This document shows, piece by piece, positions 27,007 through 58,947 of a stretch of 64,000 nt of DNA; the stretch's first letter is position 1, and every line of letters begins with the position of its first letter. The notes below the pieces were generated by a model, which saw nothing but the letters and a program-made list of their open reading frames with translations, had not been told where the DNA came from and ran no database searches. The position numbers and the translations under genes are program-made. Source of the stretch: Octopus sinensis (lineage: Eukaryota); the NCBI RefSeq assembly GCF_006345805.1, contig NW_021833018.1:1-64000 (forward strand), given 5' to 3'.

Positions 27007-27470
27007 CAGGTGTTCTCAACCGGGGGCGAATCGCCCCCTAGGGGCGAAACTTTTGTACAGGGGGGCGATAATATATTTAATAAAATATTCGAATTTTAAT
27101 ATAATACAAGTATTTATACATGATCATGCGAGCAGGATCGAACCTTTCAGTAGGATCTCCCTCGTTCGGATCGGCGATCACGGGGATTATTATAATTAAC
27201 TGGCTTACCCGTCTTTGGTCTTTAATAAATAAATAATCTAAGATGTCTTCTCGCTCAAATAAGAAAAGTCGTCATTATCAAAACGAATATTTAAAATATG
27301 GGTTTATTCAAGTACTGAAGATACAGAACAACCATATTGTCTTATTTGTCAATGTTCTTTCTCAAATGAGGCGATGAAGCCATCACGATTACAGAATTAT
27401 TTAAAACGCAAGCACCCGGATAAAATGTCAAAGCCGATTGAATATTTTCAAAATTTAAAATACAATTTTA
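27007..27470 (+). mobile_element. hAT element, 5' fragment (BED-like zinc finger)
   Basis: CAGGTGTTCTCAAC terminus. RHYQNEYLKYGFI..PYCLICQ..SNEAMKPSRLQNYLKRKHP. Confidence 0.75.
27121..27236 (+). mobile_element. 5'-truncated copy of the SINE at 43579-44010
   Basis: Near-identical to 43890-44005 (GATCATGCG(A/G)GCAGGATCGAACC..GGTCTTTAATAAATAAATAA). Confidence 0.85.
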
Positions 27471-32424: not shown

Positions 32425-34499
32425 CTAGCTCGGCAGCTCGCTTCGCTCACCGCGACCTAGCTCCTGCGGAGGGCCTGTTTCATCAAACAACTATAAGTTT
32501 ATGTAGATGTATAAAACTACCTGGTTTAATGTAACCCTATTCTATCGCCTGTTGATAAACGATGTTTGTCGTCCGTCCTTCCGTGGCATATATGAATAAA
32601 TTTTCTCTTCTGCCTACCCTCGAGCATCCCACATACAGCTGTCCATGTGAAAAGCACTCACTCTCTAAAAATAACCCAACTACCTTTAATGACTGTCCCT
32701 GGGCCTTGTTTATTGTCATTGCAAAACTCATCCTCAAAGGAAATTGCAGCCTTTTAAATCTAAATGGTAATTCATCAGAAATTATCGGAATTCGTGGAAT
32801 ATAAACATCCTCACCTCTATACTTACCTGTTCATATCGTCGCCTCTATTACGTTAGGCATCAAATTTTTGAGAACTAACCCCGTTCCGTTGCATAATTTA
32901 GGTGGCGCAAGATTTCGTAATAAAACCACTGGAACGCCTATCTTTAACTTTAAAAGATGATTCGGCATTCCAGAGGGATCTAAGGAGTTTAAAAATTCAA
33001 TCCGGTTGAATTTTTAGAAAATAACAAAAAAATAAAGAAAAACAAATAAAAATAAATAATTTAAAAACAAAAAAATAAAAAAAACAAAAAAAAACTTTAA
33101 AAATTTGTAAAATAGTATAAACAAACAAAATCTCTGCCGCCACGGCAACAACCAGTCTAATTTTTTAACAGCCAATTAAGATAATGCTTAAGAGCCTTTA
33201 TAGTACGGAGATTTAGCTTAGTGACCTTGATTAGACAAACCACTGGCGGAAATGGGGCAGCCGGAGATGCGGCAGGCAGAGTAGCAGCAGCCAAAAAAGC
33301 GACACACAAAAAAGATTTAATTAATTACCTTAAGCTGACCGTTTTTTCTTCAGCTTCGTTTTTCCTCCTTCGGTTATCTATTTAAAAAATTATTTTTCAA
33401 TAATAAAAAAGTTTAGGAAAAGAGGCATACCGAAAATAAATTCTATCTTTACGAAAAACTTAACTAAATAGTTAATATTTTTACGCAAATTCTTCTGATT
33501 GCGCTGTCAATTGGTGGTAAATTGTGTTAATAATTGTGCTAATGTGGTTTTAACTATCAAAGTGTTTTTCAAAATCTGTTAATTGCACACTCTATTCAAG
33601 GTCGTGCAATCTGTAATTGCACATTCTGTCAAAGTCAAATATGATAATAGCTTTAATTTTGATTCATGGTCGATAATGATATATGCATTTAATTTTAAAG
33701 AGAAAATCATAGGATGAATTGAATTTCTTTATCGCGAATAATTGGGAGTTCATCATTGTTAATATTCTCGCTGTCGTTTTCATCAAGGATATTCTTAATA
33801 CGTTAGATTTTTGCCTCGAAGGTTTTAATGGACCTCATCATGAATGTCGAGGACATTAACGTTGTTCATTTTAATCAAATGCAGAAAATAATTTTTTGAT
33901 TTTTTGGCGGGAAGGTTTTAAGGACCTCATCATGTAAGTCGAGGACATCGTAGTTGTTCATTTTAACCAAAATGCAGAAAATTTTTTTTTAATTTTTTTT
34001 TGGGGGAGAAGGTTTTAAAAACTTCATCATGTAAGTCGAGGACATCGTAGTTGTTCATTTTAACCAAAATGCAGAAAACTTTTTTTTTAATTTTTTTTGG
34101 GGGGAAGGTTTTAAGGACTTCATCATGTAAGTCGAGGACATCGTAGTTGTTCATTTTAACCAAAATGCAGAAAATTTTTTTTTAATTTTTTTTTGGGGGG
34201 AAGGTTTTAAGGACTTCATCATGTAAGTCGAGGACATTGTAGTTGTTCATTTTAACCAAAATGCAGAAAATTTTTTTTTAATTTTTTTTGGGGGGAAGGT
34301 TTTAAGGACTTCATCATGTAAGTCGAGGACATTGTAGTTGTTCATTTTAACCAAAATGCAGAAAATTTTTTTTTAATTTTTTTTGGGGGGAAGGTTTTAA
34401 GGACCTCATCATGTAAGTCGAGGACATCGTATTGCCAATTTGAAGTTGGTGTGCACACACAGACAGACAGACACACACCATACCATTTTATTATTAAGA
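32425..34499 (-). mobile_element. Non-autonomous Helitron, subfamily B
   Basis: Same A|TCTTAATAATAAAATGGTATGG 5' end and CTAG|T 3' end as the A copies. Helicase C-terminus ([42 protein letters not shown]) and a diverged satellite. Confidence 0.9.
33780..34430 (-). repeat. About 7 units of a diverged ~94-bp satellite inside Helitron B
   Basis: Unit AAAATGAACAACTACGATGTCCTCGACTTACATGATGAAGTCCTTAAAACCTTCCCCC.., homologous to the A unit but with shared diagnostic differences. Confidence 0.92.
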
Positions 34500-36000: not shown

Positions 36001-36439
36001 TTAAATTAATTTACTAATCTAACTTATTTTATGATTTTATGACGGAATTTTTGCTATTTTTAATGAATTTTGTGTCCACAAGAAATAATTACAGGCCTCG
36101 ATTGGTGTCACATAGAAACTTTAAGGCTTAGTTTGCTATGCCAGGCTTTCCTCATTATAGCACATGTATGGCCTTAAAGAACAATCACAAATTTTTCTCA
36201 CTAGTCAAACAACTATATGGATGACAAATAAATTTAACTAAACAAATTACTCCACCAATCAACAATAGTCATGCACCACTACCCAAAACATCAAGCTATC
36301 AGTCTGTCAATTCTTATCGTGATCAGTTTTTTTGCGTTGAGTCAAATTGATCCGATAGCTCCAGTTTTGGTGGTGGTCTTATGTCAATTCTTTTAAATTT
36401 GAGCTTTGCAACTATATTCCTTAAAACCCCAAAGATGGT

Positions 36440-37080
36440 TGCAGAAGAAAAGGGAATTGCTGGTTTGCAGTTTGGCTTGCAGAAGAAAAGGGAATTGTTG
36501 TTTTAAGACTCCTGATGCCGTATCGAATGCCACGGCGGATCATACATTTGCCATTTTCTTAGGATTACTGCGAAAAGTATCTGAAGGGCAAACCTATGAT
36601 AGAGAAAACAAATGGATGGGCTGGGATCCTTAGCATTTTTTAGGAAAAGGCTTACCAGGAAAAACATTTGGCATTATCGGCTGTGGTGGGTTTGAAAGGT
36701 TGCTGTTCGTCGAGCAGTTAAACTTGATCTCAATGTCATTTGTTATCATTACCGTAAAAATTGATGCTAGGGTTCGTGAGTTGAGCAAAGTTTCTTAGAA
36801 AGAAATGCTCGAGACAGTTGATTAACCCTCTCTTTATTTTCCATTAACGAAAAAAACGCGAGGGATGATTAATTATGAAGCGATTTAACAAATAAAAAAA
36901 AGCCTAACATCAACATAGCTCAGAGTCCCATCATTAAAACAAATGATTTGGTACCTGCACTAAAAAAAAACCTGCTAGGTGGAGCACCTTTAGATGTGAC
37001 AGATCTTGGACCTTTGTTAGGAGATTATCATCCTCTTTGTCATTTAGAAAACTTTTTAGTTCTACCTCATATTGCTTTGA
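36440..37080 (+). pseudogene. D-isomer-specific 2-hydroxyacid dehydrogenase (glyoxylate/glycerate reductase-like) pseudogene, intronless
   Basis: KTPDAVSNATADHTF, WMGWDP.HFLGKGLPGKTFGIIGCG (Rossmann), FPLTKKTRGMIN, INIAQSPII, GGAPLDV, ENFLVLPHI. Many stops and frameshifts. Confidence 0.85.
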
Positions 37081-37089
37081 GACTCAAAC

Positions 37090-39180
37090 TTGACATTTGC
37101 AAATAACATCGTTGCAGATGTGAAAAAATGGTTGACACCAAAGGTGCCCATCCACTCTCTTGCAAACAAAGCATTGGTTTGGGATTTAACGTGTTGACAC
37201 CAATTCCAAAACAAACACTGTCTCATTGGATGTTTATCTGGGTTCTGCAGTAGATGCTGCAGAACAAAGAAAAATTGCCAAATATAAAAATCTTGGACAA
37301 CGGTATCACGTCATTCCTATGGCTGTAAAAGCATCTGGGGTAACTGGCCCTCTAACGACTTCTTTCATCAAAGAGGTCGGCAGATAAGTTGCTGTGCAAC
37401 GTAGAGAGCTTCGAGGGCTGCAAAAAACGGCTATGCGACAACTCGCCTATAGACGAGTTGTCGCCTAACTCGCCTAAATTTATTTGGCGACAACTCGCCT
37501 ACTTAAAATAAATAAAAAATTTTATTTTTACCAGATTAAATCTAATTAATTAAAATTTCAACAATTTTGTTTACTTTAATCCTTATTATGACTGACTTTG
37601 AACTGCTTAAAAGCCAAAGAGGTGGCAAACTTTTACTACACCGGAACTATTTGTATAATACAGATAGAAAAAAAGACGGTCTTACCTATTGGAGGTGCAG
37701 AAATCGAGAATGCAGGGCGAGGTGCACGGTGGATGCTCAAAACAAGATGGCCCCTTTGAGGATCATGAGATAAAAAGCATGAAACTAGTTTCTGACCTGA
37801 AAGATTCCGCAAAGGCGTCAGAAGACAGAACTATGAATGTGGTGTCAAGAAGCCTCATTGGAGCCAATGTTGACGTCATTAAAATCTTGCCAAAGGAACG
37901 TTCATTGACTCGTCTCGTTCAACGGGAAAGAGAAACACTGATACCAAATTTTGTTCCGACCATTCCTGAAATTCCTGAAAGTTTGTGGTATAATGATCGG
38001 GGCGAAATTTTTTATCGCAAGGATTCTGGAATTAATGATGTAAATCGTTACGTCATTTTTTGTTCGGATTATCAGATTGACATTTTGAAAAAATCAGATA
38101 TCTGGGTTATTGATGGTACCTTTAAAAGCGTCTCTAATCAATTCGAACAAATGATTACAATACAAAGAAAATACTTATGTAAATTCTGGCCTCTTGCGCA
38201 CGCTCTTTTGCTCAACAAAACAGAAAATTCCTACTGTGCATTATTTGAAGAAATAAAGACACTTGTTGTTACTTCATTAGCAAGTATTTTAATTGATTTT
38301 GAAAGGGGTTAATTAACTCCACAAAATCAGTTTTTTCGTCGTCTAATGTATTTGGCTGCAATTTCCATTTCGGCCAAATCATATGGCGGAGAATACAATG
38401 TCTTGGTCTTGTGGGAGCCTACAAAGACGTTTCATCGTGGGAACGAAAATTATTGAGAAAATGCTACCATTTAGCTTTCATCCCTGTGGAAAATGTTTTA
38501 ATGGAATTTGAAAAAATTTCTCTTGATGCGACAAAAAAAGAAAACAACCAACAGATAATGAATTTTTTGGTTTATTTTAAAAACCAATTTATTGCTGACC
38601 CATCTTATGACGTCAGTTTTTGGAGTTGTTTTTATCGAGTATTAAAGTCAATGCCCAGGACGACCAATTCATTGGAAGGTTGGCATAAGCTGTTGAACAG
38701 TTCTTTTAACAGAGTGCACCCAAATTTGGCAGCTTTTGTCAATGTTTTGGCCAGGGAAGAACAAAGACTTTTTGTGAAAATGACACAAATTAAGTCAGGA
38801 AGGTATCTTGAAGTGTCTGCGACAGACTGCAAAAAGGAACTTGAACTGAGAATAGCATGTGAAAATTTTCATGAATTTGAAGTAGATTGCTATTTTAAGC
38901 TAATTGATGGTTTGATTTGCTTTAAAAGTTCAGAATAAACAGTAATTGTTTTAAAATTTTATTTTATTTACCTTTAAAATATTTTTCTTCGTAGACGAGT
39001 TGTCGCCAAAAAAATTTAGGCGAGTTAGGCGACAACTCGTCTATAGGCGAGTTGTCGCTCAACGCCTCTAACGACTTCTTTCATCAAAGAGGTCGGCAGA
39101 TAAGTTGCTGTGCAACGTAGAGAGCTTCGAGGGCTGCAAAAAACAGCTGGGGACCGCATTTGAGAACCGCTTATCTATAA
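37090..39180 (+). mobile_element. CRE-clade retrotransposon 3' fragment (zinc knuckle plus RLE), split by a MULE
   Basis: RCEKMVDTKGAHPLSC, LVWDLTC, AAEQRKIAKY, VIPMAVKASG. Confidence 0.75.
37429..39066 (+). mobile_element. Mutator-like element (FLYWCH plus MULE transposase), decayed
   Basis: TIRs of about 75 bp built on GCGACAACTCGCCTATAGACGAGTTGTCGC. FLYWCH (SQRGG..YLY..YWRC..C) and MULE core (IDGTFK, LIDFE, GCNFHFGQ, RTTNSLEGWH). Confidence 0.92.
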
Positions 39181-39272
39181 TACCTGAATGAATCTACTAA
39201 AAACTCAAAAAAATCTAGAAAGGCCTTATAGAAAAACTTCTTTTTTAAGTCTGCAAGATCAAATGGTTTTTC

Positions 39273-39623
39273 ATGAAGTTGGTAAGCCTCGAGCGCTTTA
39301 ATTTCTCAATTGAAAAGGTCTTGGATGATAGGTTTGCTATATTGATCGACTCTCTCCATCAATTAGAAATCAATATTCATGAGATGAGAGAATGTAATCT
39401 CCTAACAGAGGTTTTCGGAAAACCTTATGTCGAATTACAAATAGATATACGAGAAATAGAATCTATCAGATCTGATACGGTCCAAGTAGCCTATACTCCC
39501 GTTGAAGATTTTACCCTTTACCCTGTTCCAATTTATTCCAACTTTTTTGAGTCCTATCCAGTCTACTCTGCATTATCTGAAACAATAAAAGACAAATACT
39601 GTGCAGGACGATTTTTTCGTTAA
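39273..39623 (+). CDS. Hypothetical 116-aa ORF or terminal exon
   Basis: Open, protein-like composition, no motif recognised. Confidence 0.3.
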   Translation: MKLVSLERFNFSIEKVLDDRFAILIDSLHQLEINIHEMRECNLLTEVFGKPYVELQIDIREIESIRSDTVQVAYTPVEDFTLYPVPIYSNFFESYPVYSALSETIKDKYCAGRFFR

Positions 39624-39829
39624 TTTGATAATTTTATAAATTAATAAATAGCTTACTACAAAATCTGCTTTAAAATCGTACAGGAATAATGAAAATATTT
39701 GCTTAAGAATAGATTCGTTTATTGTTTGAATTGTTAATTTTTTTAAATGTTTAAATGACGCTTTTTGTTAACAATTTAGTCAATTTCGCGTTTAAATCTT
39801 TATGGAGTGTATTTTAGTTTCGATTTCAT

Positions 39830-41482
39830 TTTATTTAAACAAAAATGAAAATATGGAAAAGTAATTCAAATTCTTTTTTTTTGAAATAGCAAATAGTTGT
39901 CTATTTTCGATTGCAATCATAAAAGAACAAAAATTTAAGATATAAAGAAGTTTATTCCGAAACAAAATTTTTATAGTTTTAACGATAGCTAGTCTATTAA
40001 TATCGATCTCGTAAGGGGCCTCATGATTGATCAACATATTCGTCGAACTAATTTGGACCCTGTCGTGCTGTAAAATCCCAACGACAGTATATTCAGTACA
40101 ATCCAAATGTTCGTGGAATGGTCGACGGCGTGTTGTTGTATTCGTATCTGTGTCGGTGTGGATGACCACTTTCGTCCCAGAGGAAAGTCAAGGATATCAT
40201 TCCTCCAATTAGATCGTCTCCTCATGGATTCAGCAGCACTATTAGTATTCCTCCTCGCAATATCTCGTAAATCTTCGGCTGCTGCAGAAGCTACTACAAG
40301 TCGATCCATCTCGTTGTCGTTTGTTTCCACATCAAGTCCATGTAGTTCTTGTTGAATTTGCTCGGTTCTTGGCTCTTCATTGTAGTCAAGTTGATTGATG
40401 GAATCAATATATTCAATGAGTGCCTGAGTATGACCTCGAGCCATTTGTTCTCTAATCCGTGGGCCATACATCAAATGAACAGGAGAAAAGCGCGTTGTAG
40501 AGTGTATCCTTGTATTATATGCGTATGTTATATTTTCGAGGATATCAATCCAACGAAATCCATTCCCGTTGGTTAATAACGTCGAACTGAGCATCCATTT
40601 GAGTGTCTGATTAAGTCGTTCCACTTGACCCTGTATCCAGGGACATCGGGCCCTCCCCCTGACATGGCGAATTCCAAATTCTTCGCACAACTGCGTCATC
40701 CGCGAGTTGCAGAATTCAAGTCCATTGTCGGTATGTATTATGAATACTTCCCCCAAAGAAAGAACAACACTTCGTATCCTCGGTATCACATCAGCCGAGT
40801 TCTTTGATTTCAGTGCTGAAGTCCAACAGTATTTCGTAAACGAGTCCATTATCACCAGCAACCATTTTTCGCCACTATTTTGATCGCTGTAATATCTTAG
40901 GTCCACAAGATCGATAATCAGCCTTTCTCGTGAAAACTTGGCAATTATTGGAGTAATTTGTCTCCTGGTTGCGAGCGTACGACGAGCTATGCAAGTTGTA
41001 CATGCACTTAGAACATGATTCATATGCCAAGTTCTTCATATGATTGAATAATTATCTCGACCTGGATGCCCCGTATCCAGGTGACACAACCGGACATAAT
41101 CATAAAGTTGTTCTTGTTCTTCAACAGTAAAAAATCGGACAAAATGATCAACTCCACGTTTAAACATAAGATTCGGCGGAAAGTGAATAAACTTACTCGC
41201 CCGGAGCCTGAAGGAACGAATTTCATTGGCGGTACTGAGTGTTGACGTAAATTCGCATTGACTAGATAATCAATAATCTGATCCCTTTCATAATTGCACA
41301 TCGATAGATATCCCATGCTCAAATAAAAATTTATTATTTTTTGCAAAAAATAAAAACATTTTCAAAAATAAAAATGATTATTACTAAATAGACATATAAT
41401 TTGCTTAATTTATTTATATTTGAATACTATGCGCTCTATTTACTACGGATCGCTATTCCTGGAATCCCTATTTACTGCGACA
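39830..41482 (-). mobile_element. Second Ginger-like/KRBA2-type rve integrase element, intronless
   Basis: 5' terminus TGTCGCAGTAAATAG at 41482. H2C2 tail CTTC, RERLIIDLVDL, IMDSFTK, HTDNGLEF, QGQVERLNQTLK, YNTRIHSTTRFSP. The 3' TIR was not found. Confidence 0.85.
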
Positions 41483-41538
41483 ATAAGTTTTATTATAATT
41501 AGCTTTTAGCTCTTTTTAAAGAAGGTTTTCTTCTTGAG

Positions 41539-43405
41539 TCAAAAGCTCTTTATTGAGGTAATTGAGTTGAATGTTTTATTTAGCACGAAACCAAGAGAAC
41601 GAAAACAAGTTATGTGGTTAAAGATACGGTCTTTTATGAGACTTGACATTGTTTCTTCGCAGTATTGACCGTTTATTGAGGTAACGAAGAGAATAGCTCC
41701 AGTAAAGGCAATTCCTAAGAAAATTAGAAAGAGGTAAAGAGTAATTGAGATAACAGCTCCTGTTCCAACAAGCTCGATTTGGTCAATTTGAAGCGACGAT
41801 GAACTTGACTTACCCAATCTAGAGCCTTCCATGTCAATCGCTGCTTTTCCTTTGACCTTTGACTCATTTTTAGTCGAATCAAAGAAAGAGTACTTAACGA
41901 CTTTGTTCGTGATATTTTGGAATGCCTCTAAAAGGAAACTCATCATGAGAGAGGTAAGACCTACCTAGTGCATAAATAGATCTAATGTATTTTGAAAAGA
42001 CACCGCAGAAAGAAAACACCTCCAGATATTCCTATAGCTCAAGAAATGATTTGTGGACTAAAATGCCAGTAAAATTTTCTAAAAATGTTTCCCCCAAAAA
42101 AGAATACAGTTATAAGAATTACAACTCCAACAATTGTGGTCACTCGTTCCATAAACATTTGATAATCTGCTTTTGTAGGAAATTACATCTCTGGGTGAGC
42201 TTTTTAAGTCACTTCAGCCATATTAATCGTAATGGCGTATCCGATGACAAGGACAACGATAGCTAGAAAGTACTTTGAAGATAAAATATGCTTGATACTT
42301 TTGCGAAGTGAAAACTCAGTTTTTTGGTGACTGCTTGCTTTGTTACATTTGGATCATAGTAGCGCTTGTCGTTGCGGACATAGCGGTTTATCCTCCAATA
42401 AACAACCATGATCATGATCCTTGCAACAAAAACATATCCTAATAAAGATTGCAGAGTAAAACAGCAGCTTTGGCCTAGAAATTTCTTTCCATAGTAATAA
42501 CTGAGAGGACAGGCTAAGATTGGTGCGAGATCTATTGTTGCAATAAAGAGGGTATAGGTCCTTTTTGCTTCTGTTACTTTGCAGATGTGATTGGCAAATC
42601 CCCAGGAGAGTAGGAAAATACGACCTGTCCCCAAAGCTTCATTGTAACAAATCCGAATAGTGTATTTTACACCAAGATGAGTTGTGAACCAAATTGCTGA
42701 TTTAGTAGAGCTCAAGCACTTATGTTAGGGTACAAGATGAAACTATATATTTGAACAATAGAGAGGAAAATAGAAATAATTCCGTAAAAAAAGTTTAGCA
42801 TTTGAAGAAATTACTAAGCTTAGAATACCCATAGCACAAAGGATCGACGAAAAAAGACAAACTCGCCTTTTAGGATACTAATAACTTCTGCTCCAGAATG
42901 TTCTGCAGCCATTACAATAGGGTCCTTGGAAAGAATTATTGTGGAGTAAACTAGAGAAGCGAGAAATTTAAGAAATAAGAGATGGAACATCTTGTCGTCG
43001 GCTTCAGAGCCGGGCTCCGCAGCCAACCTGGCCGAAACGCTAAAAATCAAGAAATACAGTGCATTATCTCACCGCCACATCTTTGCCCCGATCGCAGTGG
43101 AGACATCGGGAGTCCTCGGCCCCAGAACTAAAAAATTCCTTATTAAACTAGGGGATTTGGCAAGCAGAAGAAGAAATGATCATCGGGAACGGACATGGCT
43201 TTTCCAACGCATATCAATAGCCATCTTGCGTGGGAATTGCCATTCCATCCTATCCTCTGCTGCTAATTAAATATACATAATTATCATAAAAAAAAATTAG
43301 AGATGGAATACTTTTTTAGTTTGAAAAAACAAAATGGCCAGATTTTTTGAACTCAAGAGGACTTATAGGATTCGGTACTATTTATGATCTGTTATTTCAG
43401 GACAT
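41539..43405 (-). pseudogene. Nucleotide transport protein (NTT/Npt/Tlc ADP/ATP translocase family) pseudogene, chlamydial/rickettsial type
   Basis: Colinear motifs: IWP..KLKK, KDPIVMAAEHSGAEVISILK, SKLSN, SWGFANHICKVTEAKRTYTLF, YWRINRYV..DKRYYDP, FQNITNKVVKYSFFDSTK, ESKVKGKAAID.EGSRLGKS. Intronless, with many stops and small deletions. Confidence 0.92.
42988..43298 (+). mobile_element. 5'-truncated CRE-clade retrotransposon inserted in the NTT pseudogene
   Basis: RLE C-terminus (AETLKIKKY..FAPIAVETSG..LFQRISIAILRGN), A-rich tail, and 8-bp TSD AGATGGAA (42980-87, 43299-306). Confidence 0.88.
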
Positions 43406-43453
43406 TATTCTATCTACATACTTAGCAAAAAGTAACACAAACAATGAAAATAC

Positions 43454-43482
43454 AAAAAAAACTCCGAGAATTTACTCGGGGT
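43454..43482 (-). terminator. Bacterial-style intrinsic terminator upstream of NTT
   Basis: Minus strand ACCCCGAG-TAAATT-CTCGGAGT followed by a T7-8 run (one stem mismatch). Confidence 0.45.
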
Positions 43483-43578
43483 CTTAAATCATTTTTGGAA
43501 TTTTGAATTTTATATTCAAAGTTTTAATTTAGACCAGAGGTGTCAAAAATGAAGCCGTCGGAACGTATAGGTGGAGCC

Positions 43579-44010
43579 CCCTTGGCTGGAGACTAAGCTA
43601 TGGATAATGGATTTGGACAGTCGTGAGTTCGATTCCGAAGGAGGCAGTTTTCATCCTGGGGCCAATTCTCGTTATCGTTCCCCTGCCCGTGAGGCAACGA
43701 GTACTTCTGGCATGACACAGTTGGAAACAGGGATCTCTTACCTTCCTTCCGGTCTTAGCGTGGCGTTATGGGGTCCACCATGTCAGTTGGAAAATTCCAT
43801 TCGGATATGGCAACGCTCAGGAGGCACTTAATGCCTACCGAAAAAGGACTTCTAGATCTCAGACCCTGGGACATCGTCGTCTCAGGCCGATCATGCGGGC
43901 AGGATCGAACCTTTTCAGTAGGATCTCCATCGTTCGGATCGGCGATCACGGGGATCATTATAATTAATTGGCTTTACCCGTCTTTGGTCTTTAATAAATA
44001 AATAATAAAT
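43579..44010 (+). mobile_element. Full-length tRNA-headed SINE
   Basis: B-box GTTCGATTC at 43627-35 with a degenerate A-box upstream, (TAAA)n tail, 12-13-bp TSD (T)ATAGGTGGAGCC, and a second partial copy at 27121. Confidence 0.8.
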
Positions 44011-46199
44011 ATAGGTGGAGCCTGCGACCCTCGTGTGGAACAGTAATGTTTAGTCGAGTAAAGCAACTGTGCCGTGCAGTCAGATTTGATGTTTATAAAA
44101 TACAAAAATTATTTCGGGGTGTGACTCAGATTTAATATTAATGAAGAAATTCTCGAACTGGTACCAATGGTCGAAGACTACTAAAAGTAAAAATATCTTT
44201 TTTAAACTACAAAAACTTCTCTTTGTCTAAGATTTGATTCAAAAAAGGTTTTATGTTTGCACACCTATGGTGCTCCGGATATAGCTCGACAACATGCTGG
44301 AGTTGCTGCTAAATTGCGAGTTAAAATAGAAAAGTTAAATCCTAGCTCATTATTTACACATTTTAATTATTCATCACCAAAATTTGTGCTCAAAAATTTT
44401 AAAAATAGAAAATACTATTATTCCGATAACAAAAACAATAAACTTGCAGCTCACCTAAATGATTATTATCAGCGGCTAGAGAGTTTAAATAAGAAGCACG
44501 ATTATTTTACAAATCCCTAAGGTTTATCTAACTTCACTCGTGCTATTGCAACATTAAACCGAGAATTTCACGAAAAATCGGATCACATGTTTTAAAATCT
44601 CAATTGTGTTCTTGTCAAAGGGCATGATTTTGTAGAAAAAATTATCAATGAAGTGGTGTATGATTTCAAAGCTTTATGGGACTACATAGCTGATTCAGTT
44701 CATCAAGAAGTTAAGCCCTAAAAAATTTTCAAAGAAATCGGCCGTATTAAAAAAGACTCTTGAGTAAAAATAGGCTTCATAGCCTGTTTACTATTCTTCT
44801 CTTCAAAAAACAGTTGAAAGGCTTTTTTATTGTTTAAAAGAAGTTAGTTTTATAAAAGGTGATTAGAGAAGTTGTGTAAGAAAAGGCACTAAAATGCACG
44901 TGTGCTGTTCAAAAGTGCCAGAATTTTGTTTATTTTTTGTTGTATTTTTTCCACTATTAATTGTGCGTGGGAAGATGCTCAAAGAAAGTGATTTTGGAGA
45001 AAAGGTATGATGAGTCTGATGATCAGGAAATCAGTACATATGAAGATATGATTTTGGATTGTAAGAAAGATGGTATTTTCACTATTAGCCTGCCAAAAAA
45101 TTTCCTGCTGAAGGAATGACATGCATTGTGATCGTTGCTGGTCTCATTAGTTGTATGAACTGATGATTCATCTTGTCTACGAGGAGGTGGGTGAGCTTAT
45201 TGCATGCCCCTCAAAAAATAATTTTTCATTTCTCTTTCATATATGCCTAGCAATAAAAAAATAATTAAAAAATCGATAATGCGAGACATTTTCAATCAAA
45301 ATGGTCTGAATCTTTTACATTCACGTCTAATTCAGAACAAATACCAAAATGCCTTATTTGCCAGGAAACTTTAAATCAAAACAAAAAGTCAAATTTAGAG
45401 AGACACTTAAACACAAAACACTCAAATTTCGTAAAAAATATCCAATTGGTGATTCGCGAAAGAAAGCTGTCGATGTCGTTTATCAAGGCATGTTTCATTA
45501 AATCCTATGAAGAACTTTTTCACGATTTTTTAAATAAGGCAGAAATCGTGAATAAGATAATAAATATACCTTTATCTGTAAAAATAGTAGCTGACAAGAC
45601 TTTTAAGATGTCTTCAAATGTGTTTGTTCAACAAGTTCCTGACATGAAATTGGATAATTGAATTTTAATAAATGTGGAGAAGCGCAAAATAGCGCAATAA
45701 AAGACATATAATAACAGTAACATATACATTTTTAAAATTTTCATTAAAAGATAGAATGAAATTCAATAAATAAAGATAAAAAGGAAAATAATGTTTCACA
45801 AATTTCAACATAAATCAAATAAACAGATTAAAGGAATAAATAATAAGATTTCAAATAATTTAATCATTAAAAGAAACTACATCTCGAAATATCCTTCCTA
45901 AATCTAATTTCATAAAAAATTAAAAGAGGGTTAATTATAAAAACAGCACTACAAAATGAATCAACTGAATAATTTATTAGGTTTGCCATTAAAGATTAGG
46001 ATGATTACTACACAATTTTGAATGTCAGTAGTTTATACCCTTGTCAGCTATCAGTATTTCTATTTGAATTGATGTGGTGGAAACGTAAAATTCGGTCGAT
46101 CAGGCCTTTTTGAGAGTTTATCACAATTTCTATAAGCGCGATTATGTTACTCATATCCACCTCGTTATCCTGGACTTTCTTATCCGTATTTATTGTTGT

Positions 46200-52050: not shown

Positions 52051-55000
52051 AGATTTAAAATGTTTGTTCACCTTTGAGATTTTAAATTCAAAATAAAAAA
52101 CTGCATCAAAAATCTCAAATCTGAGATAGACTTCACAAATACTACATTGAAGAAAGTATTACATCAATTAAGCCAAAATAAACGCCTGTAAGTTAATATC
52201 TAAATTGAATAACGATACATCAATTAATTAGAAATAGACGCTTGTAAAATAGCACTTTCCAAAGGCTAGAAATTTTGGTGTTAGAAAAGTTTATAATTAT
52301 GACCAATTATTTAAAATAAAAATATACAGCCATCGTGTTATTAAGACAGTTTCTAAACGGATTAACCTACAATTGCCCAAAAAGATTGGATATGACATTT
52401 TTTGGAACAATCAGCTGGTCTCTCGACAGTCATGGGTCTTCTTAAAGATCCGTACTCTGATTCCAGAAAAAAGAATGTGAGTACACATGCCAATGACACC
52501 ACTGGTTTCCGAATAAGGCATATTTTTAATATGTTCTTTTCTCCTCTAAGTGGCATATATGCTGGAGTCACAATGATTTGACAATTTTTGATTATGAAAA
52601 AGATAAACCGATTTTAACCATCCTGTGGATCCGTATGATTTAACGTTTGGTTTTAACTAAAAGAACGTGGCTCGTACTGATGCTATTCAACATTCTGGAA
52701 GGTCTTAAAACTATGCGTTTTTGATTAGTTCAAAGCTATCATTGGATATACTAACAAGCTCTAACTGATAGTACAAGTTTATTGTTTTTAGAGACCGACG
52801 GATGCTTCGATGAAGGATCTCTCATTTCAGTTTGCCAAGAAGCAATTCTCAAGAAATATTGGTAGTTTCAGATTAATTATTTTCGCGAAAACAGAATAAA
52901 GAGTCGATCACTTGTTTGAGATAAATGAAAAAAAATAAGCTCAAGGTGGCAATCAAAAATTATCTGCTGCGTACAGCGTATCGGGATATTTATGAATACT
53001 ACCTAAAATCAAAGGCATACTACGGTGATGGCATGTGATCTCAATTATGTGAGCGAAACTTTGTAGGTGCAATATTTACAAAAGAAATACAGTAAATACC
53101 CCCAAATTCGCCAATTCTTAGATTCGTTTTTTTGAAAAAATTCTAGTTTCAATGGAAATTCGCCAATTCTGAAATTCGCCACAATGTTTTTAAAATTTTT
53201 AAATAAAAAATAAAAAAATATTGATACATTTTTAAAAAGCATTACGCAACGTGGGTTTAGTACTAATTACACGAGACTTACAATACAACAAAAAATTGAA
53301 ATTTTGCGATATAAGGATGAAAATAAACAATTATCCTGTCAGAGAATTGCTGATAGATTTTCTCATTTGTTTAAAGTAATGATTTCGAAGAGGACAATAA
53401 ACAATATTTCGAAGATGCGTGAAAGGATTTTCGCACAATATAAAAGCGTCAATTTCTCGAAAAAAACTTTAAAAAAGCTGAAATATCCGGAACTTGACTA
53501 AAAACTCGTCAAGTGGATGGATCTTATGGAATCGAAAGGTATTTTTAATAATTTATAGTTTTAAGTTCTTTCTAGGGCAACCGGAAAGTTGCTCTTAAAA
53601 ATGTAAAAAAATTGACCCTAAAAGTCAACTAAATTGCTTTAAAAAATAAAAAAAAGTTGACATAATATGCATAAAAAGTTGCCCTAAGAAACAGAAATTT
53701 ATTTATTAAAGCACAACATTAAATAGTATTTAACATTGTCAGGTAGGAAATTTCTATCTTTGGTTAAAATTTTGTGAAGAATAGAAAATGATCTTTCTAC
53801 TTCACACGATGTTGCCGGGCAATCCAATAATAATGCGCGGTGAAATGGAGTAATTGGTAGCTTAGATAACTCCATTATTTCGAAAATGTCGTTTCTTGAA
53901 ATTCGTAAGCTTATGTAGTCTCGAATTTTGCAGGAATCTTCTTTAAAATCAACATTTTTCAAAAAATGATACGCTCTTAAAATAGTGAATTTATTAGATT
54001 CAATTTCCATTAAAATATCTGTTAATAAATTATATTCCCGGCTTATGTCTTCTAAATTCGTATAAAGAAATTCATTCATAACGGATTCCTTTGCTCTTTG
54101 TACAATAAAGATTCCCATTCTATACCATTACAAATATTGATGATTTTTTGCATAATAGTCAGCAGCATTTAACCAACTGCCCCATCTAGTTACAATGGGC
54201 TCGGGTAGATATCCAATTTTTGTAAATAATTGACGTCCTGAATTATTTTTGACAACAAGTGCTTTGACGCACGATATTAATTTATCTACCTCTGGATAAT
54301 GTGATTTAATTCTGAAGGCACAATTATGTAATAAATGCGCCACACAAGTGACATGAAATAGATTTGAATATAATTGCTTTAATACTTTTTCAGAAGAAAC
54401 CATATATGAAGCAGCATCAGAAATAAGTAAATAAAAATTTTTCCTATCAACATTGAGTTTGCGAATGACGTCATCAATAATTTGACATATAATCGCGGAA
54501 TTGGGAGCTGTATTAATTGCAATACAATCAATTAAAAAAATATTCTTGTGGATTTTTTAACGTTCCATCAAGACAATTAAAAAAAATTAATATACTTCTC
54601 TTTTCCAAAATCACTTTCGTCAATCATTAAAACAATTTGTTCACTTGAAACTGTGTTAATAATTTGTGAAACCATCCTTTCACCAAGAAATGTAACAATG
54701 TCTCTGCATTTGGTTTCCGAAGGAACAGAATGTCCATATTTATTAAAAAAATCAATAATTGATGTATTTCGGAATATTTGCTGATAAAAATGCATTTGCA
54801 AGATCCACGGCAAAACAATCAGCAGTAACCTCATTTTTACTATGAGTATCCAAAGTATTATTCGTATCTGGGATTCTCAGAATATGCTTTTTAGAATGTC
54901 TGTGCTTATCAATAAACCATTGCTTGTTGTTGTTGCATAACCCCGGTCTCACATTAGGGTATGAGACCGGCGGCTAGCAGAAACAACAGCGCCTTCGCGG

Positions 55001-58000
55001 GTTGCTCCCAAAGGACCTCGGGGGAGTGGACAGCAAATTTCCTGCGGACAGGGAGGAGAACAGGGCAGCGGAAAAGGTGATCAGTTGAGTGATCTTCGGC
55101 ACAGCAGAGGTTGCATACCGGGGAGATCACGACGTTCAATGAGTGAGCGTAGGAGTTTAGTGAGTGGTGGTGGCCCGAGCGGAAACGAGCAAGGTTGATC
55201 TGAGCGGAACGCTCCAGAAGCATTTCGGAGGGGTGAACTTCCGGAGGAAGTTTGTTGAGGACAGAGTTAGGCTTCAGCCTTAGAATGGACGACGTTGAAA
55301 TGAAGTCGTGGATTTTTTTCATTGGCTGTGAACATTGGTTTAGGCCATTGATTTTGGCAAGTACCCGGGAGTATAGTTTGGCAGGCGTGTTCTTCAATGC
55401 ACGGCCGTTGTCATTTAGCGTGTTTAGGGCAGTGCAAGGGTGGTAGAGTTTTCGCGAAGCGAATAGGAATTGTGCTCCTCTCATGTTTAGATGTTCCTCT
55501 ATCGGGAGAAGGTTGGTTTCACAGTGCAGATGGTCGATGGGTGTTGATTTCAGGCACCCGGATATGATGCGCATGGCTTTGTTTTGAATTGATTGGAGAG
55601 CCACAGAGGAGCTCATAGAAAGACAGGGAGCCTAACTCGGACTCGCGTAGCTTAGGACAGGGCGAATGTATTGTTTATACACACGTTTGAGAAGTGGTTT
55701 CTGCGCACCAGTGATGCGACCACTTATTGCTTTCAGGATATTTGTGCGCCTGTTAGCCTTGTCAGAGATCTTCGAGACATGTTTATTGAAGGACATTGTT
55801 GGGTCGAAGGTTAGTCCGAAAACAGTGGGGTGTTTTGATAGTGGGAGAACAGAGCCAAAGAGAGATAGGTTGGGATGTATGTTTGATTGTCTTCTGTCGG
55901 AAGATAATAGGGTGACCGAGGACTTGGAGGACGAGGCCTCGAGCCTGTTTTCTCTGAGCCAATTCTCAACGGAGTGAAGTTGTTGCTGAAGGTTGAAGGA
56001 GGCAGCTTTGTAGTCTTCGTGTTTTGAGGCAATAATAATGTCGTCAGCGTAAGATAGTGTCAAGTTGTTAGGATCGTTTGCCGGGAAGTCGTGCAAGTAA
56101 AGATTGAACAGGGATGGAGACAGCACGGAACCCTGCGGTACCCCATTTGGAAGATAGCGTTGTTTGGAACAATGGTCCATGAGGGAGACGTAGCCAATGC
56201 GGCCCGATAAGAAGTTAGCAAGCCAGGATTTGTAGTTTGAGTCTAGGCCGGTCGTGAGAATTTTCTTGGTGAGACCGCAACGGGGGACGCTGTCAAAAGC
56301 TTTAGATATGTCGATGGAAGCTAGAACTGTTCGTTTTGGGGGCCTCTTCACATTGAAACCGTCCAGGACGAACTGGGAAAGCGTTGTTAAGTGAGTGGTT
56401 GTTGAGTGCAGTGGTTTGAAGCCATGTTGGGTGTGGGATGTTGGTAAGTGTTTCGAGACTCGTGAAAGGATTAGTCTTTCGAGGATTTTAGATAGCGTGC
56501 ACAAAAGAGAGATTGTGCGGTAGGAGCTTGGAATGCCAGCCGGTTTGTTCGGTTTGATTAACGGGATGATACGTGATTTTTTCCAAAGAGATGGAATTTC
56601 GTTTTTTACAACGGAATTGTTGAAAATAGACACTATAGCGTTGATGGCGTTGGGGCCAAGTCTTTTAAGGTGGTGGATAGAAATGTTGTCAGGCCCCGTG
56701 GCGGGGGAATTCTTCGAGTTTTTTATACACTGCGAAACTTCGTCTGCAGTGAAAGGCGGTAAGGATTCCGTGCGAGGTAAGCTCCTCCGAGATTTGGCGA
56801 CCTTTCGGTCGTTTTTGTTTGAGGTTTTGTGGCTTAAGGAGGCGTAGTAGTTCATGAGCGAGTTTGCCTCCTGAACCGGATTCAGTGGGATGTTTGAGTT
56901 AGAAGTGGCAGATTCATGGGACTTGGGCTTTTCATAAATCAAATCATTCATGTCCTTTAGGGTCTTCCAGATTTTGGAGCTGTTAGATCTGTAGTCGATT
57001 GAGTTGATAAATTCGGACCACTTAGAATCTGCGTGTAGGTTAATGGCAGCGGTGATTTGTTTGTTTAGGTTAGCCAATTCAATAGAGGACTCGGCAGAGT
57101 GCCTTGATATCTGTTTCAGTTTGTTGCGAGTCTTTATGAGGGATTTCACTTCGTGGCTGTAGTTAGGGCGGAACTTTTCAATTTTTCCTTGGGGGATGAA
57201 ATTTTTGGAGGTGGAAATGATGAGAGCATTAAGGTGATTGACTGCTGCATCAGTCGAGCAAAAGCTGTTAATGTTGAAATTATTCAGAGAGTTTTCTAGG
57301 GCAAGGCGGTATTCGTCCCAGGAAGCTCTTTTGTAGTTAGTGTAACAGCGGCGTTGTAGGTCAATGTTAGATTTTAGCGCATTCTCGATTATGATTGGGT
57401 TATGGTCACTGGTTAGGTCATAAACCACCTTCCAGGAGGTAGCAGAGGCCAGAATAGGAGTACACAGTGAGATGTCGGGAGAGGAGATTGCGTCGCCATT
57501 TCTTGACGGGGTTCTGGTATGGGATGAGGAGTTGTTGAGGATGACTAAACCATCAAGTTGATCAAGTAGAAGAGTTCCTCTTGAGTTGAGGAATTGATTT
57601 TTAAGCCAAATCGGGCTCTTTGCGTTCATATCACCACAGATAAAGACATTACTGAGGGACTGGAGGTTTTGTATTGAAGGTGTCCAACCGTGAGGACAGG
57701 ATGAACACGGAGGGATGTACATGTTCATCAGCCTTCTGGTTGAGCGCCCTGTAGAGACCGTTATAGCCGTCAGCTCAATTACAGGGTCGTTATCGATTAG
57801 TGTGTAAGCTTGTGATGTACAGTTAGAGAAAGGGATTGATTTTCTGATAAGGGTTAAAAGGCCCCCGCCATTTACGGAGTTCGGTATGTCTCGCCGGATG
57901 TATGAGTAACCCGGGAAATCGGGCAGGCGGTTTTTGGGCGAGAGCTTCGTTTCCTGCACCAAAGCAATGTCCACGTCGTACTTCTCCATGAAGGAACAGA

Positions 58001-58067
58001 GTTCAGTGGTCTTGTGGGCGATCCCATTAATGTTTACTTGCAGGATACGAAGTAGGTTCTTCCTGGC

Positions 58068-58150
58068 GGGTCCAGGGTTTTGTTCGATGTCTCCGGAGAG
58101 GAGAAGGGCGAGTTGGGAGTGTAAAAGAGAGGTCCTTGGGAGCAACGGCT
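58068..58150 (-). other. 2A-like StopGo peptide upstream of APE
   Basis: LLPRTSLLHSQLALLLSGDIEQNPG|P matches D(V/I)ExNPGP. Confidence 0.88.
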
Positions 58151-58210
58151 TCGCGCCTGCTCTGCTGCCACCGACGTCACGGAAGGTATCCGATCCGACA
58201 GGGGGGAGGT

Positions 58211-58285
58211 TGTGGGTCTTTTGGTAGTTAATTCCATGAGAAACTATCATTTGCCACCACGAGAAGGTGACCCACATCGACAAAC
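58211..58285 (-). ncRNA. HDV-like self-cleaving ribozyme at the LINE 5' end
   Basis: GUUUGUC GA UGUGGGUC ACC UUCUCGU GGU GGCAAAU GA UAGUU..AACUA CCAAAA GACCCACA. P1 has a G1-U wobble. P2 is 8 bp and P3 is ACC/GGU. P1.1 is UC/GA, and P4 and a J4/2 C are present. G1 is the first base after the TSD. Confidence 0.85.
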
Positions 58286-58947
58286 AAACCATTGCTTATT
58301 AGCAGTAACGTAAGAATTACATAATTTGCAGAATAATTTTCCATCCAGTGAAGATGAAAACTCCTTAGGATATTTATTAACAATAGAAGAAATTCGCTTA
58401 GTGTTGGAACTCCTGTTTTTAGGCATTGTAAAAAAAAAAGCAGTCAACAAAAACCGAAGAAATGACGGTAAGAGTAGAAAATTGACTTTGTTGCTTTTAT
58501 AACTATTTATATATACATTTTTTATCGAAATAATTTGACTAATATCATTTTAACACTATAATTAAACAAAAAACTCAAGTTGACTTTGTTGACTTTCGGT
58601 CGCCCTAGTTCTTTCCTAAAATTATGTACATTTCTAAAAATGCAACAGGAATAATTCAACCAATGGACTTGGAAATTATCAAAACATTTAAAGTGCACTT
58701 TAATAGGCACAAATTATTTTATCTTACTAAAATTTTTGAAACAAAGTTTTGGTTTATGAATCCTATAAAAACATTTAAAACTTAAGGACACTGTTTTTTA
58801 TAAAAATGGCTTGGGAAGACGTATGCTCGAAAACTATTGAAAATTTCTTCAAAAACTGAAAAAATAGATTTTGATGAACAATCTACAGAAAAAATTTTAA
58901 TTGATAATTTAAACAGATATTTATGATCCTAATTTTTTCAATTACAT

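Follow-up and report, generated by a model that had tools for sequence, protein, structure and literature searches.

A neutrally decayed tract of Simkaniaceae DNA carrying a nucleotide transporter pseudogene and interrupted by host transposons in a eukaryotic contig

The 64-kb stretch of DNA analysed here (the window) contains, at 36472-45239, a tract of roughly 9 kb of bacterial origin, in which six or more genes, all of them broken, are accompanied by intergenic DNA and a conserved terminator. Its blocks, and the host DNA between them, are given below together with the corresponding positions in L001, a single Simkaniaceae-like bacterial metagenome contig.

36472-37070, plus: relic of a D-2-hydroxyacid dehydrogenase/glyoxylate reductase-type gene, left edge of the tract (L001 20146-20747)
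37071-39170, no strand: host insertions between relic blocks, a retroelement-tail paralogue split by a MULE
39171-39604, plus: relic of the C-terminal half of a 315-aa chlamydial hypothetical protein (L001 11822-12271)
39605-41502, no strand: host DNA in place of the 3' end of the donor NTT gene and the intergenic region (replaces L001 11508-11821)
41503-43385, minus: TLC/NTT (Npt1-type) nucleotide transporter pseudogene (PF03219 in three frames and alignment to L001)
41562-41671, no strand: 110-bp insertion near the NTT 3' end, flanked by a 13-bp direct repeat (alignment to L001)
42988-43298, plus: 3' end of a 5'-truncated non-LTR retroelement (92-aa ORF tail, A9TT tail, target-site duplication)
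43386-43536, minus: donor intergenic DNA upstream of the NTT gene, with a terminator and a gene scrap (blastn to L001)
43537-44458, no strand: non-bacterial filler in place of ~5 kb of donor sequence (L001 4479-9469)
44459-45147, plus: relics of two adjacent chlamydial hypothetical genes (L001 3776-4478)
45139-45239, minus: Fic-domain gene scrap (~100 bp from its 3' end), forming the right edge of the tract (L001 2909-3010)

A preliminary description of this DNA had proposed the presence of a near full-length, intronless and decayed fossil of a chlamydial-type NTT at 41539-43482. The relic does lie there, but its coding sequence spans 41503-43385. PF03219 is matched in all three minus-strand frames, and the matches tile profile positions 109-285 (E=7e-13), 257-383 (E=1e-25) and 368-491 (E=2e-24) with scores of 49-91 bits against the cut-off of 21 (Pfam), while an additional N-terminal stretch extends beyond the profile range of 109-491. 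The conceptual translation of the relic, in which the frame was changed and an X was placed at each lesion, matches chlamydial NTTs with E=8e-163 and 65% identity, so that the repaired protein is recognized as a TLC protein, the check that had been proposed for it. Its best protein matches are all from Chlamydiota, and the top one is the transporter of L001 (P0001). The label "near full-length" is correct, since donor codons 1 to about 502 of 518 are represented. The relic is 86% identical to L001 in nucleotide sequence (1439 aligned sites) and can be aligned with P0001 from end to end. P0001, its nearest intact relative, passes the TIGR00769 model (452 bits vs. the cut-off of 387) and matches the structure 9j3n, "ADP,ATP carrier protein 1", with E=1.7e-117. 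The relic, which fits the TLC/NTT family profile over most of its length, is of the same family (PF03219, TIGR00769) as the chlamydial Npt1-type NTP/NDP exchange transporters represented by 9j3n.

Unlike those carriers, the relic cannot encode a protein. Its start codon has been mutated from ATG to ATA (43385-43383), and its reading frame is disrupted by eight in-frame stops, nine one-base deletions, larger deletions of 35 bp and 24 bp, and two insertions of 311 bp (the retroelement tail) and 110 bp. The last ~16 codons are missing from the truncated 3' end, and introns are absent. An intact ORF for a carrier of ~500 aa and 12 helices is not present, and this copy is a pseudogene of the TLC/NTT family, not a functional member of it. 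The 13-bp direct repeat that flanks the 110-bp insertion, TTACCTCAATAAA (gene sense), is located at 41549-41561 and 41672-41684 and occurs once in L001. No further copy of this insertion was found within the window by self-blastn.

The retroelement tail entered the NTT gene at codon ~27-30. It is 311 bp long, retains only the last ~92 codons of its ORF and ends with A9TT. The target-site duplication, for which 8 bp had been reported, is a perfect duplication of 10 bp, AGAGATGGAA, at 42978-42987 and 43299-43308; this sequence is single-copy in the uninterrupted donor-like contig, where L001 10080-10089 aligns with both duplicates. The duplication, together with the A-rich 3' tail of a 5'-truncated copy, identifies a non-LTR insertion. 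Diverged paralogues of this tail at 37241-37414 (41%, tblastn) and 52360-52509 indicate that it belongs to a resident host family. The claim that the NTT fossil is located in eukaryotic DNA therefore holds, because it is interrupted by a host retroelement with a target-site duplication. The fragment itself contains no RT, has no Pfam match and has just two weak, anonymous database matches. The CRE label that the preliminary description gave to the element is tentative. The tail motif resembles elements of the REL-endonuclease type (R2/CRE/NeSL group), which we take as a lead only.

Upstream of the pseudogene, the donor intergenic DNA is preserved (blastn identity of 84.6% to L001 9889-10096 and of 86% to L001 9470-9512), including a 43-bp scrap of the upstream 195-aa gene at 43494-43536. 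The terminator-like hairpin noted earlier in this region is genuine: a minus-strand stem-loop at 43479-43464 followed by T8 (-12.5 kcal/mol, z=-3.0; terminator scan and fold) is a rho-independent terminator, which belongs to the upstream bacterial gene and is unchanged relative to L001 apart from a single G>A substitution.

The remaining blocks are damaged to a comparable extent. The left-edge relic, named after the NCBIfam and Pfam matches of the intact L001 gene, is 87.3% identical to its donor counterpart over 607 bp (blastn; 60% over aa 86-226 in tblastn), has indels of 1, 1, 1 and 4 bp and shows mismatches of 15.7/11.6/10.0% at the three codon positions. The gene of the 315-aa protein is directly downstream of the NTT gene in the donor-like contig, and its relic is 82.7% identical over 434 bp (tblastn 75% over aa 217-309, with a match also in tblastx) and has indels of 1, 1, 11 and 3 bp. 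The block at 44459-45147 (blastn 87.0% over 705 bp) consists of the relic of a 129-aa gene (~44434-44773; tblastn 67% over aa 18-126) and the N-terminal part of a 303-aa gene (~44898-45147; tblastn 56% over aa 3-73). The Fic-domain scrap is 82.4% identical over 102 bp (tblastn 50% over aa 200-239). No match to L001 1-2908 is present anywhere in the window, nor to the 3.7 kb that follow the right end of L001 in the donor contig.

In the assembly as given, host elements are present both inside and between the bacterial blocks, and their families have other copies in the window. At 37071-39170, where ~7.9 kb of donor sequence is absent, the retroelement-tail paralogue (37241-37432) is interrupted by a MULE DNA transposon (37435-39058) with 68-bp terminal inverted repeats and an 84-bp flanking direct repeat (37349-37432 and 39065-39148). 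The repeats around it are 97-99% identical in self-blastn, and the match of its ORF 37689-38312 to Pfam MULE is sub-threshold (20.7 bits vs. the gathering cut-off of 27.6, E 5.8e-4). The host DNA at 39605-41502, which has no similarity to any of the bacterial loci compared, encodes on the minus strand a 330-aa ORF (40031-41023) with an integrase domain (Pfam rve PF00665, E 1e-13). The filler at 43537-44458 has no bacterial match and contains a dispersed host repeat (43889-44006) that is 95% identical to 27122-27237 (self-blastn). The tract is flanked by an 18S relic and a hAT-like element, the hAT/BED-like host element being located after 45239.

Comparison of the whole tract with L001 reveals eight blocks of 82-87% nucleotide identity, all reversed relative to L001, strictly collinear and in a single orientation, while other Simkaniaceae loci are only about 68% identical to the tract. 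The closest relatives of the NTT relic are encoded on gene-dense bacterial contigs, with synteny preserved across L001, L002, L003 and L004. In the NJ tree (26 taxa, 452 columns, microsporidian and plastid NTTs not among them), the relic and P0001 are sisters in 200/200 bootstraps inside Simkaniaceae. Together with "Simkania sp." OZ244056 and P0002 they form a clade (200/200) that leaves Rickettsiales, Parachlamydiales and other non-Simkaniaceae outside. The origin from Simkaniaceae is hence indicated by phylogenetic nesting as well as by gene order and nucleotide identity that extend to non-coding DNA. The tree gives a chlamydial donor, far from Rickettsiales. Because the relic nests inside Simkaniaceae and matches a bacterial contig in nucleotide sequence (82-87%) and in the order of genes, its transfer was, as had been suggested, independent of those of the microsporidian, Rozella and plastid NTTs, and microsporidia and plastids are excluded as its source. 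A rickettsial, microsporidian or Cardinium-like donor is ruled out by the tree and synteny.

L001 and L002 differ in gene content, and some of the apparent deletions in the tract may represent such differences between the true donor and L001. Since about 25 kb of the donor-like contig was covered by the comparison, more of the donor may have been inserted originally, or other pieces of the insert may be located elsewhere in the genome. The donor-like metagenome (3300017991) appears in the table of one paper without a habitat and is missing from the supplements of the chlamydial pangenome paper.

The decay of the tract is neutral. Mismatches to L001, summed over the tract, are spread evenly over the three codon positions (14.5/11.4/15.3%), as they are in the NTT relic alone (13.0/11.2/17.9%), as compared with 9.5/3.1/49.9% and 10.1/4.3/50.8% in functional pairs. 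Frameshifts are present in every gene relic, GC to AT changes outnumber AT to GC changes by 128 to 42, and the GC content of the NTT gene has fallen from 42% to 36%. No signature of CpG methylation was detected in the decay (C>T 16.7% at CpG vs. 15.7% elsewhere). The pattern is that of pseudogene-like evolution after transfer, and, as the flat codon-position decay is the same in all blocks, no phase of purifying selection in the host can be detected.

When the whole window was compared by tblastx with 76 bacterial loci (about 1.2 Mb), no bacterial relics were found outside 36480-45240. Three isolated short matches (at ~15.0, 18.2 and 30.1 kb) are single segments of low identity, which we regard as noise. 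The remainder of the 64 kb consists of transposons and satellite; tRNAs were not found in the window, and no viral or foreign eukaryotic sequence was found in association with the tract. The intact 886-aa RT ORF of the window has no relative of more than 42% identity among 5.8 billion proteins. The 18S relic is too decayed for placement. The set of transposons fits a metazoan-like eukaryote, and it is this transposon content, together with the 18S relic, that suggests an animal host and a nuclear location.

The explanation that we favour, with a probability of about 90%, is that Simkaniaceae DNA was integrated in bulk into the nuclear genome of the host and then decayed neutrally under repeated transposon hits. 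A single genomic piece from an intracellular Simkaniaceae (Chlamydiota) bacterium would have been inserted, corresponding to a span of at least 17.8 kb in the closest known relative and carrying the NTT gene, its neighbours and the intergenic DNA in bacterial order. Released from selection, it would have drifted towards the AT-rich composition of the host, accumulating point mutations, stops and small indels with no preference for a codon position and losing roughly four-fifths of its length through deletions. Host transposons would have hit it repeatedly, leaving the non-LTR tail with its target-site duplication in the NTT gene, the MULE, the integrase-bearing element and the dispersed repeat. 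The arrangement of the blocks points to a single insertion event, probably in nuclear, germline DNA. Its age can be put, from the neutral divergence of ~12-14%, at very roughly tens of millions of years, a figure that depends on the host mutation rate.

The preliminary description had read the relic differently, as a gene-specific acquisition of an NTT by a parasitic animal, in which energy parasitism failed at this locus and perhaps succeeded at another. No other piece of the tract is indeed as long or as complete as the NTT relic, in which ~97% of the codons are represented, and adaptive acquisition of NTTs is established knowledge for microsporidia and Rozella (PMC5923384, PMC5381601). However, no fewer than five unrelated neighbours of the gene, along with intergenic DNA and a terminator, came in with it in bacterial order; the gene decayed with the flat codon-position profile common to all blocks, in which purifying selection in the host is undetectable, and it has neither introns nor eukaryotic signals and has lost its start codon. 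A transporter-specific transfer is therefore not supported as an account of this locus, and we regard the scenario of energy parasitism as very improbable. The NTT relic shares one collinear, evenly and neutrally decaying block with at least five other broken genes, so it is the trace of a past infection and not of an attempt at energy parasitism that failed; nothing in the tract suggests selection for ATP theft. The relic is a functionless molecular fossil of a chlamydial infection that probably had access to the germline.

Two other explanations compete with bulk integration. Reads of a living chlamydial symbiont could have been mis-joined to host contigs, as symbiont reads are frequent in host sequencing projects, and complete Simkania and Neptunochlamydia MAG chromosomes are among the GTDB species-representative genomes. 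Yet eight stops, nine frameshifts, a lost start codon and comparable damage in every other gene are implausible in a living bacterium, eukaryotic transposons interrupt the blocks, one of them with a precise target-site duplication, the composition has shifted towards that of the host, and four-fifths of the collinear donor span is gone, so that we consider contamination hardly credible. The gaps of 5 and 7.9 kb between some blocks, filled with host repeats, could instead suggest that small pieces from the same symbiont were inserted independently on several occasions, or that the DNA came via an intermediate such as a virus or another eukaryote. Against this, the eight blocks retain donor order, one orientation and similar divergence (82-87% identity), and it is very unlikely that independent insertions would have landed in order within 9 kb; the tract has retained intergenic DNA and a terminator of bacterial origin, and viral or foreign eukaryotic sequence is absent from the tract. 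Such piecemeal or mediated entry seems to us as far-fetched as contamination.

Insertions of DNA of Wolbachia and other endosymbionts into the nuclear genomes of arthropods and nematodes have been reviewed (PMC3798261, PMC5541319). Like Wolbachia insertions, the tract is a bulk, multi-gene and non-selective sample of symbiont DNA in which bacterial gene order is kept, and its genes are neutral fossils into which host transposons have inserted and which deletions have eroded. Its donor, a member of Simkaniaceae (Chlamydiota), differs from the alphaproteobacterial donor of Wolbachia insertions. A non-exhaustive literature search yielded no account of an animal genome with a multi-gene insertion of chlamydial DNA. 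With the NTTs of microsporidia, Rozella, and plant and algal plastids the relic shares the entry of the same gene family into a eukaryotic genome from a source of the intracellular-bacterium type. Those NTTs are ancient, single-gene, intact, expressed and selected, whereas the relic is recent enough to show 82-87% identity to a living bacterial lineage, is accompanied by its neighbours and carries no sign of selection. As a pseudogene with no constraint and with a bacterial terminator and neighbours still attached, it does not resemble functional acquisitions of the microsporidian or Rozella type. The tract as it stands has no bearing on the energy metabolism of the host.

Among intracellular bacteria, it is chiefly for Wolbachia and a small number of other heritable symbionts that bulk transfer of DNA into the chromosomes of animals has been documented, and Chlamydiota are usually viewed as pathogens and as symbionts of protists and invertebrates. 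A multi-gene tract from Simkaniaceae would extend the range of donors to Chlamydiota and implies past germline access of such a bacterium in the host lineage. A Simkaniaceae symbiont with germline access, past or present, could also have left further, larger insertions, one of them possibly containing an intact, expressed gene such as that of the NTT, which would then be an animal-encoded ATP/ADP exchanger of chlamydial origin; we consider this very unlikely. It is much more likely that more chlamydial fossil tracts are present elsewhere in the host genome, and these would constitute the first record of "paleosymbiosis" for Chlamydiota in an animal lineage. When chlamydial or NTT matches are found in eukaryotic assemblies, their neighbours should be inspected for bacterial genes before adaptive acquisition is claimed. 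Through orthologous loci in related species, the tract may serve as a datable marker of the association, for which the organism behind JGI contig Ga0180434_10000199 would be a specific living relative and a candidate present-day partner.

In all three minus-strand frames of 41400-43600, translation followed by a Pfam scan matched TLC (PF03219) at 49-91 bits (cut-off of 21), and the frame pieces (109-285, 257-383, and 368-491), together with an N-terminal stretch, tile the 491-position profile, which bears out the preliminary description of a broken nucleotide-transporter (NTT) gene at about 41.5-43.5 kb and places it on the minus strand. With a conceptual translation hopping frames, in which X was placed at every lesion, 836 relatives were found. 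The best is P0001, an intact bacterial NTT of 518 aa (E=8e-163, 65% identity), and all named matches belong to Chlamydiota (Simkaniaceae, Neptunochlamydia, and ‘Chlamydiia’). P0001 itself is a full family member (TIGR00769, 452 bits vs. a cut-off of 387) and matches the solved structure 9j3n, ‘ADP,ATP carrier protein 1’ (E=1.7e-117). In a neighbor-joining tree of 26 NTTs (452 columns; microsporidian and plastid sequences left out), the relic and P0001 were sisters in 200/200 bootstraps, inside the Simkaniaceae clade and distant from Rickettsiales, Parachlamydiales, and others, in agreement with the chlamydial type proposed earlier.

P0001 and a second relative, P0002, sit on gene-dense bacterial contigs with synteny in common. 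Comparison of the whole window with L001, a 21.6-kb locus around P0001 (JGI metagenome 3300017991, contig Ga0180434_10000199, 93.6 kb), revealed eight nucleotide-level blocks of 82-87% identity, strictly collinear.

Blocks common to L001 and the window (all in reverse orientation)
L001 20146-20747, window 37070-36472: 2-hydroxyacid dehydrogenase
L001 11839-12271, window 39588-39171: 315-aa hypothetical protein, downstream neighbor of NTT
L001 11449-11507, window 41561-41503: NTT
L001 10080-11461, window 42987-41672: NTT
L001 9889-10096, window 43497-43291: NTT start and upstream intergenic DNA
L001 9470-9512, window 43536-43494: upstream-gene scrap
L001 3776-4478, window 45147-44459: 129-aa and 303-aa genes
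L001 2909-3010, window 45239-45139: end of Fic-domain gene

Of a 17.8-kb span in the donor, about 3.4 kb of donor-like DNA remains. Nucleotide identity is only ~68% at best for other Simkaniaceae loci, the complete ‘Simkania sp.’ chromosome OZ244056 among them. When the window was searched in translation against 76 bacterial loci, no bacterial-like DNA was found outside 36480-45240. The donor-like contig was compared over only ~25 kb in all, and in this stretch the 3.7 kb that follow L001 have no counterpart in the window; therefore, the left tract edge is real at that scale. Exactly at this junction, the short sequence ttgcagaagaaaagggaattg occurs twice in tandem (36438-36490), which may be the footprint of an end-joining event. 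Only ~110 bp from the edge lies a eukaryotic, strongly AT-decayed 18S rRNA relic (36074-36362, minus strand; Rfam RF01960, 51.3 bits, model positions 1178-1604 with internal deletions), which may be an rDNA fragment caught at the same break as filler or an unrelated pseudogene. The NTT neighborhood is syntenic in three Simkania-like genomes (L001, L002, and L004), with varying cargo (two Fic-domain genes in L001 vs. a P-type ATPase in L002), so some window ‘deletions’ may represent the donor's own gene content differing from L001. A DNA-alkylation-repair gene lies near NTT only in L002 and a further such locus, L003.

The terminator-like hairpin noticed earlier upstream of NTT is real (terminator scan; CCGAG-TAAATT-CTCGG and T8, minus strand 43479-43464; -12.5 kcal/mol, z=-3.0). 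In L001 its counterpart (CCCCGAG-TGAATT-CTCGGGG-T8) comes after the upstream 195-aa gene, which makes the hairpin the terminator of that gene, brought along with the DNA.

Alignment of the relic to L001 revealed a start codon changed from ATG to ATA (43385-43383), eight in-frame stops (donor codons 11, 91, 119, 301, 308, 356, 381, and 498), nine one-base deletions, and deletions of 35 bp (codon 140) and 24 bp (codon 414). The final ~16 codons are gone, and non-bacterial DNA (39605-41502) occupies the place of the 3' end and the next intergenic region. A 311-bp plus-strand insertion (42988-43298), which ends in A9TT and carries the final ~92 codons of a retroelement ORF, is bordered by a perfect duplication of AGAGATGGAA (42978-42987 and 43299-43308), present once in L001 (10080-10089). 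The target-site duplication described earlier thus stands, but its length is 10 bp, not 8 bp, and the CRE label given to the element is a tentative one. Diverged paralogues at 37241-37414 and 52360-52509 indicate that the inserted tail belongs to a resident family. Near the 3' end, a 110-bp insertion (41562-41671) has on both sides a 13-bp direct repeat (span 41549-41684) that is single-copy in the donor; it has no further copy in the 64-kb window and may be either filler left by repair or a very small non-autonomous element.

By codon position, NTT differs from L001 at 13.0/11.2/17.9% of sites and five relic genes summed at 14.5/11.4/15.3%, compared with 9.5/3.1/49.9% (L001-L002) and 10.1/4.3/50.8% (L001-L004) in functional pairs; therefore, nearly all of the divergence accumulated free of coding constraint. 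To judge from the small excess at third positions, the donor would have been very near the L001 lineage at the time of transfer. At ~12-14% neutral divergence, the insertion may, as a very rough estimate that depends on the mutation rate of the host, be tens of millions of years old. Changes in NTT run mainly from GC to AT (128 vs. 42 in the opposite direction; C>T and G>A make up 99 of 195 substitutions), and its GC content fell from 42% to 36%, approaching the ~33% of the window. The decay is a general C/G to T/A drift (transitions at 15.8% of C/G vs. 4.3% of A/T sites). In the bacterial DNA, C>T shows no excess at CpG (16.7% vs. 15.7% elsewhere), and over the whole window CpG is not depleted (observed/expected of 0.92), which together suggest little germline CpG methylation in the host.

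The DNA between the relic blocks consists of eukaryotic mobile elements.

Elements between the blocks
37435-39058: MULE with 68-bp inverted ends, within another retroelement tail (37241-37432)
40031-41023: rve integrase ORF, 330 aa
43889-44006: dispersed repeat, 95% identical to 27122-27237

The MULE terminal inverted repeats (37435-37502 and 38991-39058) are 97% identical. The 84-bp direct repeat bordering this element (37349-37432 and 39065-39148, 98.8%) far exceeds a normal MULE target-site duplication and is itself part of the retroelement tail. The remaining window contains Tc1/mariner, pogo, hAT, Helitron-like helicase fragments, APE-type non-LTR elements, and a 96-bp satellite, a set that fits a repeat-rich, AT-rich, metazoan-like genome. 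One APE-type ORF of 886 aa (55632-58292, minus strand; Exo_endo_phos, Exo_endo_phos_2, and RVT_1) is intact and followed by a 220-aa ORF (54954-55616, minus strand), which makes this an apparently young element. In a set of 5.8 billion proteins, the closest relative of the 886-aa ORF has an identity of only 42%, so neither the host nor any close relative of it is represented there. The satellite arrays (14880-17225, 18958-20080, and, inverted, 33818-34431; ~25, 12, and 6 copies, unit identity of 94-95%) adjoin Helitron/PIF1-like helicase fragments (~20.9-21.6 kb and ~33 kb), which suggests a Helitron-carried satellite.

We consider it highly probable (about 90%) that Simkaniaceae genomic DNA was integrated into the host chromosome in bulk and once: the DNA would have entered in a single event and would then have decayed neutrally, lost pieces to deletion, and taken transposon hits. 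Contamination or mis-assembly is very unlikely, since a living bacterium would not have such NTT lesions, nor are eukaryotic transposons with target-site duplications expected in it. A microsporidian or plastid source of NTT is excluded by the nesting of the relic in Simkaniaceae and by nucleotide-level synteny with a bacterial contig. The earlier reading of the relic as failed energy parasitism, in a supposedly parasitic animal, is unsupported at this locus, because unrelated neighbors arrived together with NTT and no episode of constraint is seen; NTT is a passenger of the integrated DNA. Bulk insertion followed by neutral decay is the established pattern for insertions from Wolbachia and other symbionts (PMC3798261, PMC5541319), and the tract shares this pattern but differs in its donor. 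As no published multi-gene chlamydial insertion in an animal genome was found in a non-exhaustive literature search, the chlamydial donor sets this tract apart, in a notable way, among known symbiont insertions.
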